This document shows positions 17,246 to 37,524 of a stretch of 64,000 nt of DNA, in pieces. Within the stretch, counting starts at the first letter, position 1. Every line of letters starts with the position of its first letter. Source of the stretch: Paragordius varius (lineage: Eukaryota > Animalia > Nematomorpha); contig OZ176056.1 in the NCBI GenBank assembly GCA_964247055.1, forward strand, positions 7,440,001 to 7,504,000, read 5' to 3'. The notes beneath the pieces were generated by a model that saw only the letters and a list, made by a program, of their open reading frames with translations, had not been told where the DNA came from and made no database searches. Made by a program: the position numbers and the translations under genes.

Positions 17246-17719
17246 CTAATAAGCTCCCCCATTCCACATTGCCGTAATACCATCAAACACTTCATTGTAA
17301 CCCAGAGTGGTATGGCCTCTAGGCCCGTATCTTCTATTCATATTAGGTGACATAGTTTGACTATTCATATTCATATTATTTCGATATACTGGGACCAATT
17401 CAAGTTCATAACCTACGGGTTTTACATTCCCAGGTCCTTGTTGAGGCAATTGTCTATAAGTTCTTGATATTAAATCTTGGAATTTTTCAACATTGGCCAC
17501 GTTATTTTGACGTAGAGATTTTATTGCTCTGGATGTATCTGAAACTGCGGCATTTTTACTTGTACCGTATATGATCAAAATTAATCCCTAAAATTTTTTA
17601 AAAAAATTTTAAAAATTTTCATTGGATAAAAAATATTACGCTTGAAACTGAAATAAGATAAAAATGTAAAGGAAATTATAAACCATGAATATAGGCCAGC
17701 ATGATTTTCGGAAATCCAT
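17246..17719 (-). CDS. Secreted precursor E, about 125 aa, unknown function. Exons 17719-17684 and 17587-17246
   Basis: Model MDFRKSCWPIFM|GLILIIYGTSKNAAVS...KSLR-QNN...RTYR-QLPQQGPG...NMNRR-YGPRGH...WNGGAY*. The phase-0 96-nt GT-AG intron gives a signal-peptide-like N-terminus. Exon 2 is a clear non-random ORF; the choice of exon 1 is inferred. Confidence 0.6.
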
Positions 17720-18595
17720 GTAATATGAGTTTGTTAAAATTTAAATATGATAATTTATATTTTGATATAATTTTGCTGACTATTATACCCAAAGGCAATC
17801 ACCAAATTTACTTATATAAATTAATCAATATAATTGGCCGTATTTTGATATTGATCGCTTTTTTTACGTTATGCATAAAGAATTATATTATATAGGTAAA
17901 CTAATATATATATATATATATATTTAACAAATGGTTTAATTGATGTTTTGCGGCATTTTAAATCAAGTAATTTTTATTTTAATTAATCGCGATATATTTG
18001 ATTCTGGGGCAGAAACATGCGGTGTATACTGGCATTTTATCATAAAATAGTTTAGAAAATTCATTATAGAATAGAGAATTGGCTTAAAATAATAGTTAAA
18101 AATTATATTCTGCTATTACAGCCAAACTCAAAAATTGCTCATTTAGAAAAGCTTGTTTTTAATTTTATACCCAAAAGGCAAAATAAAGAAACTCAATTAG
18201 CGCCAAAATATTCATTTCATGCGGGGATGATTTTTTATAAATCAAAACAAGGCAATGAAAGTTTTTTACATCCACATGTATGGAGCATTTATATTTAATA
18301 ATTAAAGATTTTTTTAAATCTTAACGCTATTATTATTATTATGCATAATGTATGAATTATTTTTAGTTAATAATGTAAACGTGGATTTTCCAATTTTTAA
18401 TTGATAGCTTTATGATCAAAATATAAATTAATAAATTGTTGGGCAACATATGAAAAAGACGATGATTTTTTTTGACTCCTCATAAGATTTACCATTTTTT
18501 TCAATCTGACATATAATTGTTATGAATAATAATATATAGTTATGTCCCCAGATATTGATGCAATATATACGCAAATGAAGACATATATGTATCAA

Positions 18596-18860
18596 AGGCA
18601 TAGCTAGGGGGAGGAAATGGGGCTGATACACCGTGCGCCATAATTGAAGGGGTGCCGGATTTATAAAAAATCAATTTTATTTCAAAAAATAGGTATTTAA
18701 AAATTATAATATTTTAAAATTTACATAAGAAAAACACCCATTTATGAGTGATCAAACGGTTTAGATTTGATACTTTTTTAAAATAGGAGTTACATGGAGG
18801 GGGATGGGGACGCCATAACGGGTTCATGGGCCGGTGGCCATATAAATGCAAGCTACGCCT
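18596..18860. mobile_element. MITE with AGGCGTAGCT TIRs (second copy, opposite orientation, at 57422-57653)
   Basis: AGGCATAGCT...AGCTACGCCT; internal GC-rich segments are shared with the 57.4-kb copy. Confidence 0.7.
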
Positions 18861-34233: not shown

Positions 34234-36309
34234 TGGGAAAACATGAAATAGAATGATCCAATTATATTAATCAAATACCACCATCTTTTTAATTTGTTCT
34301 AAAATAAATGTGGGCATATCAATTGCAAAATTGTATTAATAGAATATTCAGTTTTTCTGTATTTGAGTTAATTATTGTTAGTGCATTCATAGAGCCGTCC
34401 TGCTCTGACTTTCTGGCAGGTACCGATTTAATTGGGTTAAACCAACCCGGTTTCGGTTCCACCTCCAAGATTAATTTGTACGTTTTTATTTGAAATAATA
34501 TTGTTTTAATTAATAATTATATGTGATTGTTTGTATGATAACATTTTTTCTGGCTTACGAGTGGTGATTTAAAAAAGTCATTTACACTTTTATGGTGAGT
34601 GCGCCGTATCAGAAAATAGCGAAATTTGCAAATTTACATAAGTTTTTTGGTGAAAGCTAGAGATTTTATTCCAAAAAATATTACTAAAATATATCTAAAC
34701 TATATAAAAGCAAAACAGAATTTTCTAAAAATATTGATTTTTGGATGTGGGCTCCGAAAGCCTCAAATTTTTTAGCTTGATAATGATCTAGTCCTTTTAA
34801 ACCCAAAAAAGCCATGATATTTGATAAAAATATTGAATATACGCTAAATTTTGATATCAACTAAAAATATTTTTTAATTAATGTATACCGTGTTTAATAT
34901 AATTTTTAAAAAATTTTGTTGAAATATACCTCATACTATTTTGAGTCAAATTAAAACGGTTTATAAACGCCTCATGATATCATAAAAACACTTTCTCTGT
35001 ATAATTTTATAATGCTGAAAAAGTCTATTTCCTAAGAAATTTGATTAAGATATTCGTTTGTCTTCTAATTTATAAATATTGTGTTTTTTAGAAAAATTCA
35101 TAATTTTTAAGCTAACGAACCTTAAAATGCAATGTTCAACATCCTCGAATTTTATAGAAAAAGTTTTTTTTATGATATCTTAAAGCGTTTTAAAGATTTT
35201 CATCATGAGTCTCCTGATACAGTTTCCTATCAAGCACTGTGTTATATAATGGTTTACGCCTTACAAGCATTAAAACAATTTTAAGTCAATCGTGCTGCTA
35301 TATAAGTACCTATCTTTGAAGCAATTTTTGAAAACCTATGACATCATATGATTTCAATAAACTATCTAGGCAAATAGCAGGGTAATATTTTAGTCAAGCG
35401 CTTCTTAACATCCGGATAGGGCCGGTTTTTGGTAAAAAAGACAACGTGAGAATAACGTCACTTTGAAGCAGCCAAATATATAAATAGATCAATTAGGGTT
35501 CTACGTATTTTGAGTCATGACAAATTTTTAGCCAAGAGTATATTTAAATTAACCTATGGCTATACCATATATTAAATACGAAACTGTAACCAGCTAGAGA
35601 GCCTTCGTCAAAAAAAGTATGGCACAGTTTATTTTTTTTATCTTTTTGCTAAAATTGTACAAAATGGTTAAGCCTTATTAAAAAACAAAATGTTGTGGAC
35701 GATTCACCATATTGGTGACTTAGTTATATTATTACTTTTAAGTCGGTTTTGAACGTGATTGAGAATGCTTGTTAAGATAAAAACCCATTTATATGACTGT
35801 AGATCATCATAGCCTGTAATAGCCCAATACAGTAATTAATACTTTTTATATCTTTAAAAATAATTTTTAAAAAAGTTCATTTTCATGGTGGTACCCTAGA
35901 TACAAATTAGACTAGAAATGTCCAAAAAGTTGTATATCTCTAATTATACAACGTTATATACTGAATATAATCAAATAGCAAAATATATTTGCGAACATAA
36001 CCATAAATTAGAAAGAATTGATAAGACAAATAAACTAAACATAATTTTAAAAAGTTTTAAGGTTGAACATGTGTTTCACACAATCACGCTTATCTCTAAA
36101 TATAAATTACATTTTAAAATACATTAAATTAAATTGTAAATATGTTAATTTAAAAGAAAATATTATTAGACATGATGGATGATGAACAAATAATATGAGA
36201 CTTTGTTAACTTTAACAACCTTGAATTCTGTTATCTTAACGTTTTAAAATAGTATAAATATAAAATTACTGATCCAAAAAATATTTTTAGCATCTTACAA
36301 ATATCCGGA

Positions 36310-37524
36310 ATGAAAATCATTTTCATTAGTTTCTTTTTAGGTCTTGAGCTATTAATCGCATCAGGTATATATTACACTAACTTAAATATTTGACCATCAA
36401 ATTTTATTAACTTGTGAATTTTTACTTTCATTCTATTTAGGTTACCATACAACACCACATAGTATAAATAAACGCGAAGCAACAACGCACCAACATAGTC
36501 ATACACATGATTCCTATAGGAAAAGGGAAGCCACTACACATGCTATTAATCGCAGGGATATTGATGCTGTTATGACTGATTCTATCGCCAAAAATAAGAG
36601 AGATGCTGTCACTGAGAATTTTATGAATAACTTTAACACAAAGGCCATGAAAAAAAGAGAAGCCACAGATAGCTTATTTGATATGGGTACAAAAATGATG
36701 AAAAGAGATGTTACGACAGCTCATGATATGAACAAACGGGAAGCGACAGATAGTCTATTTGATATGGGCACAAAAATGATGAAAAGAGAAGCCATTTCTG
36801 ATCATTACATGGATTTCAATTGAGAAGGAGAGACGTAACAACCGCGCATGCCATAAATAAGCGGGAAGCTACAGATAGTTTATTCGATCATGGAACAAAA
36901 ATGATGAAAAGGGATGTTACGACAGCTCACGATATGAACAAAAGAGAAGCAACCGATAGTCTTTTTGATCTGGCTACAAAAATGATGAAAAGGGAGGTTA
37001 CGACAGCTCACGATATGAACAAAAGAGAAGCAACCAATAGTCTTTTTGATCTGGGTACAAAAATGATGAAAAGGGATGTTACGACAGCTCACGATATGAA
37101 CAAAAGGGAAGCTACAGATAGTTTATTCGATCATGGAACAAAAATGATGAAAAGAGACGTTACTACAGCCCATGATATGAACAAGAGAGAGGCGACCGAT
37201 AGTCTTTTTGATCTGGGAACAAAAATGATGAAAAGAGATGCTACGACAGCTCATGATATGAATAAACGGGAGGCTACTGATAGTTTATTCGATCATGGAA
37301 CAAAAATGATGAAAAGAGAAGCCAGTTCAGATCATTTTATGGATTTTAATACCAAAGCCATGAAAAAAAGGGATGTAACAACCGTACATTCCTTAAACAA
37401 ACGAGAAGCGACTGACAGTTTATTCGACCTTGGAACGAAAATGATGAAAAGGGATGTTACCACGGCACATGCTTTGAATAAGAGAAAGGTTACAGACCAG
37501 GTCGTAACAACAGCTCACTTCTAA
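36310..37524 (+). CDS. KR-repeat multi-peptide precursor D (382 aa if repaired; 145 aa as written, because of a frameshift and TGA at 36821). Exons 36310-36364 and 36441-37524
   Basis: Signal-like MKIIFISFFLGLELLIASG, then tandem KR-separated units EATDSLFD(M/H/L)GTKMM and DVTTAHDMN, 81-nt repeat period. The provided ORFs 36572-36823 and 36820-37524 are two frames of one gene. Confidence 0.85.

Follow-up and report, generated by a model that had tools for sequence, protein, structure and literature searches.

Five genes clustered in the genome of the horsehair worm Paragordius varius, designated E, A, B, C and D in their order along the DNA, probably encode single-copy, lineage-specific secretory precursors processed by convertases, gene D being a multi-copy precursor of bioactive peptides. 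The genes lie between positions 17246 and 37524 of a 64,000-nucleotide (nt) stretch, hereafter the window (assembly GCA_964247055.1, contig OZ176056.1, positions 7,440,001 to 7,504,000). The assembly comprises 110.6 Mb in 44 contigs. The window is eukaryotic, its genes are spliced, and its guanine-plus-cytosine (GC) content is close to 25%, compared with 26.9% for a published horsehair-worm genome (10.1101/2023.06.26.546503). Domain searches of the genome found no arthropod cuticle domain, nematode collagen N domain or tektin, as would fit a horsehair worm. The term orphan is used here for a gene with no relative outside its immediate lineage.

Selection on encoded peptides was examined in the repeats of gene D. 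Exon 2 encodes peptides punctuated by Lys-Arg (KR) and sometimes Arg-Arg (RR), with about two dozen such sites in the gene as a whole. The open product of 145 amino acids (aa) consists of eight peptides ended by KR or RR, one of which is attached to the signal peptide, and a last piece reaching the stop codon. The open reading frame (ORF) downstream of this stop contributes a further 15 KR-ended peptides and a 12-aa tail, mostly EATDSLFD.GTKMM and DVTTAHDMN in alternation. Comparison of seven 27-codon units, of which six lie beyond the frame break, yielded proportions of synonymous (pS) and non-synonymous (pN) differences of 0.64 and 0.05, respectively (pN/pS 0.08), with variable columns distributed 5/4/20 over the three codon positions. 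Synonymous sites are near saturation among the units, yet the peptides and the KR pairs are conserved. Because pN/pS is 0.08, EATDSLFD[LHM]GTKMM, DVTTAHDMN and their KR flanks have been under long-term selection copy by copy, and the break in the frame is therefore recent. Furthermore, all four haplotype differences listed for the downstream ORF are synonymous, a count to which cross-mapping between repeats may contribute. This pattern of conservation is what marks a multi-copy precursor of bioactive peptides.

Gene C is larger than the "small genes" of the preliminary description, with five exons encoding at least 202 aa and every intron in phase 1 with GT-AG borders. The product has a signal-like start, a 120-aa pro-region, the site RQKR before Gly, and an acidic tail in which 14 of 59 residues are Tyr. 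Heterozygosity of the sequenced individual is high at 32900-37650, with the second haplotype present at about half depth. DNA of the window was found in five sequencing runs, four of them from the worm itself; run X1 carries a second haplotype of gene C, and the same variants occur in run X5. The latter is labelled as another organism and offers no deep comparison, since its contigs are either 99-100% identical to the window or bear the second haplotype. Haplotype differences were synonymous at five of five sites in exon 4 and four of five in exon 5. Nine of ten together would arise by chance with a probability of about 3e-5 (our own binomial estimate, assuming that roughly one quarter of random changes are synonymous). 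A further change, at 33712, retains the GT donor (GTGAGT to GTAAGT), and the haplotypes differ by 4-5% in the non-coding DNA beside the gene, indels included. As the haplotype differences in coding sequence are mostly synonymous, gene C is a real gene under purifying selection.

The five predicted proteins share a layout of putative signal peptide, pro-region, basic site and low-complexity tail, as had been described from the sequence, the signal peptides being judged by hydropathy and inspection only; those of B, C and D are plausible across canonical introns. A site of the form R-x-K/R-R lies exactly where ordinary composition gives way to low complexity in A (RNKR/Q), B (RKKR/Q) and C (RQKR/G), and RTYR/Q occupies the same place in E. 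From average residue frequencies, only a few per cent of similarly long proteins are estimated to carry a motif of this kind, and a chance origin at the composition boundary in three genes is unlikely. All of the basic sites listed in the preliminary description (RNKR, RKKR, RQKR, RTYR and many KR) were recovered, and the mature parts of E, A and B do begin with Gln, the residue after the predicted cut. The tails are wholly different in composition and in net charge (A +4, B +17, C -4, E +1), in agreement with the distinct types first reported. When ORFs were ranked by codon-position GC skew (GC at first minus third positions, GC1-GC3), B exon 2, E and C exon 4 were among the most coding-like of 159. 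The splice sites of the B, C and D models are canonical and phase-compatible.

Candidate processing enzymes are available in the genome, where the P domain of kexin/furin-type convertases (PF01483) scored above its curated cut-off at two or more loci. From these features we infer that each of the five proteins would enter the secretory pathway via its N-terminal signal peptide. A kexin/furin-type convertase may then cut at R-x-[KR]-R in A, B and C, at R-x-x-R in E, and at the repeated KR pairs in D, and the Gln exposed in A, B and E could cyclize to pyroglutamate. Gene D would release acidic, non-amidated peptides, 14-residue ones alternating with 9-residue ones, in the manner of a neuropeptide or hormone precursor, its product in the sequenced haplotype being shortened by the frame break. 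The predicted peptides of A and B are Gly/Pro/Arg/Trp-rich, strongly cationic in B and mildly so in A, and would most resemble invertebrate defence peptides. The tail released from C would be acidic and Tyr-rich, and that from E rich in Gly, Asn, Pro and Met. On composition, roles in host interaction, antimicrobial activity or adhesion may be proposed.

The lineage-specific status claimed for the genes was borne out. Gene A, gene E and the downstream ORF of D served as queries in homology searches, and searches of Pfam and of the worm's own genome also included exons of B and C; B, C and E were searched as separate exons and D as two separate pieces, never joined. Word-based searches returned no homologue for A, E or the D downstream ORF, and exhaustive HMMER searching with A produced nothing usable, its one match, at E = 5.6e-4, being rejected as a bacterial repeat protein whose score was the sum of six weak repeats. 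No credible Pfam family was found for ten exon-level queries covering all five genes. A Tachystatin_B match on C exon 5 was rejected (E = 0.04), as were matches on D (NblA, RpoY and others), which were summed over repeats with no single stretch passing. Paralogues were absent from the genome, with each gene in single copy; for B the query was exon 3 and for C exon 4, and the only paralogous matches of the D downstream ORF were within D itself.

The protein collection searched contained no exact-product record for A or for a single-exon B, and the D peptide sequences were not found in the literature searched. In Atlas feature searches, B exon 2, D and A had no neighbour scoring 0.9 or higher; prohormone-like ones at 0.75-0.82 were rejected, since they fell within the range of shuffled sequences. 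Smith-Waterman comparison against shuffles detected no significant similarity between any pair of the five proteins. The N-termini of B and D have GLELL in common (z=3.9, 7/1000 shuffles), a candidate that was discarded on failing correction for ten pairs.

Table 1. Positions of exons and related features in the window; convertase loci lie on other contigs, as named. A slash marks a predicted cut or an exon-intron boundary.
Feature	Position	Strand	Remarks
Gene E, main (last) exon	17246..17587	-	GLILIIYGTSKN, then RTYR/QLPQQ; ends WNGGAY and stop
Gene E, candidate exon 1 (MDFRKSCWPIFM, phase 0)	17684..17719	-	Weak donor GTTTAT
Gene E, alternative candidate exon 1 (MNILALIEFLYFAFW)	18171-18215	-	Better donor GTATAA
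Gene A, single exon, 108 aa	25713..26039 (26039-25716 without stop)	-	Contiguous ORF
Gene B, exon 1 (MGKFIVFGLELL, phase 0)	26445..26480	+	Canonical donor CTTTTG/gtaatc
Gene B, exon 2: signal peptide remainder, pro-region, RKKR/QIEEYRRGGPRR	26545..26810	+	Acceptor tatag/, donor GAGAAG/gtatgt
Gene B, exon 3: Arg/Gly/Pro/Trp tail	27300..27576	+	Joins exon 2 in frame
Gene C, exon 1 (MKIFSALIGLIVLEVFEITYSIP, phase 1)	32454..32523	+	Donor TTCCAA/gtatgt
Gene C, exon 2, pro-region	32602-32691	+	GT-AG, phase 1, in frame
Gene C, exon 3, pro-region	32750-32842	+	GT-AG, phase 1, in frame
Gene C, exon 4, acidic pro-region, RQKR/GGWVVYDEYGSEDYYEVYFY	33202 (or 33217)..33438	+	Two possible acceptors
Gene C, exon 5, Tyr-rich YRRPPRDYNYCYGYYCNKDY	33594..33709 or beyond	+	3' end provisional
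Gene D, exon 1, signal exon (MKIIFISFFLGLELLIASG, phase 1)	36310..36364	+	76-nt GT-AG intron follows
Gene D, exon 2 to TGA	36441..36823	+	KR-rich repeats
Gene D, downstream ORF	36823..37524	+, in +2 frame	233 codons open
Sideroflexin (SFXN) exons	5910-6095, 8612-8680, 9325-9549	+	
Convertase P-domain loci	Contig C4 9885459-9885641; contig C3 7708481-7708875		Candidate processing enzymes for basic-site precursors

ORFs were found at all five sets of positions given in the preliminary description, with the qualifications that D is not one continuous frame and that the first exon of E is a guess. Of the two housekeeping neighbours named there, SFXN was confirmed on the left, and a Zn-finger gene as the right-hand flank was not confirmed. 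Gene A has a signal-like, hydrophobic N-terminus (MIRNILVMSFFLSFLIAAWLIIPLTYG) that is contiguous with the rest of the frame and convincing by inspection, followed by a short pro-region ending in RNKR and a 58-aa tail in which Gly, Pro, Arg, Phe and Tyr are abundant and which contains three RR sites and, towards the end, a CWGSPC loop. The reading frame stays open over 170 codons, a large part of them in AT-rich DNA, and further in-frame ATGs upstream (26204 and 26192) represent alternative candidate starts. The main exon of gene E is a 113-codon frame open from stop to stop (17587-17249), with GC of 0.44/0.41/0.26 by codon position and a GC1-GC3 rank of 7 among the 159 ORFs. It begins with GLILIIYG directly after the acceptor, and exon 1 candidates were taken from a list of all upstream ATG-to-GT options in phase 0.

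The model of gene B comprises three exons encoding 192 aa, with all sites GT-AG and in frame. Its product runs from MGKFIVFGLELLILSILCIQG through a pro-region of ordinary composition to RKKR/QIEEYRRGGPRR, which is continued past the intron by RNNYGPRGGNRRRY and then by the tail. Exon 2 contains a 99-codon open frame with GC1-GC3 of 0.20 (rank 4/159). The mature part of 104 aa carries a net charge of +17 and contains 33 Pro, 19 Arg and 11 Trp, and exon 3, at GC 0.69, is AT-rich at the third codon position. Two alternatives to this model were considered: an ATG at 27247, which resembles a separate signal peptide and falls inside intron 2 of the three-exon model, and an antisense ORF opposite the tail. 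Three frames are open across the tail, and GC at the third position cannot decide its coding strand because both frames share the wobble position; composition therefore does not decide between the models. The upstream exons and an RGG/RRR motif continuous across the intron favour the sense model.

The five genes had been proposed to form a co-regulated cassette. This proposal was not supported: the genes are distributed over both strands, with no upstream motif common to all five beyond chance, no significant mutual similarity among the products, and no contig of the putative RNA runs on 32900-37650. No other gene was seen between the five, and Rfam and tRNA scans were empty. The intergenic DNA contains transposon debris and a foldback-like element at 20413-21902, the inverted arms of which extend up to 179 nt, are 83-100% complementary, are made of tandem subrepeats of 21 nt and flank a core of some 400-600 nt. 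A repeat ORF, FYTGWARTGGLIQKKAK, occurs in three copies (24418-24576 on the plus strand, 29431-29733 on the minus strand and 63461-63775 on the plus strand), two of them within the island, and is probably a dispersed transposon fragment. Elsewhere in the window, 13164-13355 (-) resembles by eye the tail of a long interspersed nuclear element (LINE) ORF2 and 57669-59071 (-) a hAT-like transposase, with no credible Pfam match for either.

Several observations weigh against the precursor reading. In the reference, the frame of gene D is interrupted by TGA at 36821-23, so that the tandem-peptide polyprotein first described is not continuous in this assembly. AlphaFold2 (AF2), run on the D repeats as a single sequence, returned one long helix with an uninformative predicted template modelling score (pTM) of 0.27, and such a helix would also fit an uncleaved charged repeat protein. 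Furin-type sites also occur in structural proteins. The weakest points are the signal peptides of B and E, because hydrophobic ATG starts are frequent by chance in AT-rich DNA, 41 being present across the window; in E, the hydrophobic N-terminus depends on a candidate spliced exon, and the choice of exon 1 is a guess. The antisense ORF opposite the B tail (27647-27306, minus strand) has an ATG, a hydrophobic run and the same AT-rich wobble. Finally, two putative RNA runs, X6 and X8, contain no contig on 32900-37650, and the putative RNA runs contain almost none of the words of 25600-35500. These runs date from 2015-2017, comprise 19-30 Mb of contigs and were assigned to RNA by guess. Gene A and the first exons of B make up about 6% of the words searched, and a run had to contain 1/20 of the words to appear in the search. 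The RNA results weigh against C, D and the last exon of B and do not decide on A, the first exons of B, or E; expression of the five genes is accordingly neither shown nor excluded.

The break in D is a property of the DNA. A contig of DNA run X1 (36703-36888, 186 nt) is identical to the window across the break, which is therefore not an assembly slip, and the unit at 36806 falls short of the intact one at 37336 by 10 nt. An intron bridging the break was rejected, as there is no GT in 36780-36823 and no GC-AG pair of suitable length; the frame could be restored by one GT..AG join of about 70 nt, which was also rejected because its splice sites are poor.

A serious rival assigns A, B, C and E to the structural or matrix proteins that make up a cuticle, an egg envelope or an adhesive; their low-complexity Gly/Pro/Tyr/Trp domains would be deposited and cross-linked extracellularly, and the furin-type cut would merely remove a pro-domain. 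Nematode cuticle collagens are matured in this way, through a furin-type cut by BLI-4. At 58-104 aa, the mature parts are on the long side for peptides, they are rich in Gly, Pro, Tyr and Trp, the Tyr content of the C tail would suit dityrosine cross-links, and the four charges have nothing in common. Against this explanation, a collagen triplet pattern is absent, and Pfam gave neither a cuticle domain nor a chitin-binding one. All of the genes are single copy, while matrix proteins usually occur in families, and peptide precursors more typically show internal RR sites and an N-terminal Gln following the cut. A structural role is regarded as possible, with a chance well below that of the precursor reading.

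Part of the set could instead be non-functional, with the B tail and E as chance ORFs in GC-rich or low-complexity DNA, D as a decaying pseudogene and the clustering coincidental. The confirmed break in D is consistent with this, as are the three open frames at the B tail, the chance hydrophobic starts and the lack of contigs from the putative RNA runs. However, the D downstream ORF is still open, with the low pN/pS and exclusively synonymous listed haplotype differences given above. Purifying selection on C is clear, the coding-like GC skew of B exon 2 and of E is among the strongest of the ORFs ranked, and the B and C splice sites agree in phase. This explanation is regarded as improbable.

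It is about equally doubtful that the five are effectors secreted by the parasitic juvenile into its insect host, affecting immunity, physiology or behaviour from a fast-evolving island. Orphan, fast-diverged secreted products clustered amid transposon debris would suit such a function, and expression confined to the parasitic stage would explain their absence from the putative RNA runs, but the strict conservation of many copies in D suits an endogenous ligand at least as well. The specific version in which juvenile peptides act in the insect haemocoel, with D mimicking or modulating host signalling, and serve immune evasion or behavioural manipulation, is considered slightly more remote still.

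For the precursor reading, partial parallels exist in known systems. In C. elegans, the nlp-29 and cnc clusters encode Gly/aromatic NLP and caenacin antimicrobial peptides, and GRSP and FIP genes are also known (PMC2453101). The likeness lies in small secreted proteins of an ecdysozoan worm that are rich in Gly and aromatic residues and encoded in a short, fast-evolving cluster (PMC2453101). The nematode clusters differ in consisting of infection-induced tandem paralogues, whereas the five genes described here have no significant mutual similarity, and no homology to anything was detected for the parts searched; the five also have long pro-regions and RX[KR]R sites, and B is very rich in Pro and Arg. 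The GGWGGWG and GPWGG motifs of B recall the YGGWG/YGGYG motifs of nematodes, and among the five genes GGW-type motifs occur in B only. Pro/Arg-rich and Trp-rich cationic antimicrobial peptides of the PR-39, Bac7 and indolicidin types provide a second comparison for B, which is likewise Pro/Arg/Trp-rich and cationic but far longer, Gly-rich and without homology to them.

The known design closest to gene D is that of pedal peptide/orcokinin precursors, which occur in nematodes as C. elegans NLP-14 and NLP-15 (PMC5656890). In both cases many acidic, non-amidated peptides, of about 13-16 residues in the family, lie between dibasic sites (PMC5656890). Unlike the orcokinin type, D has no Gly-Phe C-terminal motif, and a second conserved peptide of 9 residues alternates with the first. 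Its core ..TDSL....G.. loosely recalls the FD-x-[IL] core of the family. Membership of D in the family was not supported, as the family motif is absent and homology, Pfam and Atlas searches gave no sequence match.

If expressed, the five genes would supply new secreted products for a very poorly studied lineage, the nematomorphs, in which peptide signalling, immunity and host interaction have hardly been explored. Their arrangement indicates that unrelated orphan secretory genes can cluster without tandem duplication. Genes A and B represent concrete candidate defence peptides. Gene D, if expressed, would encode a peptide family in more than 12 copies kept by strong selection, and it supplies two exact peptide sequences open to synthesis and testing.

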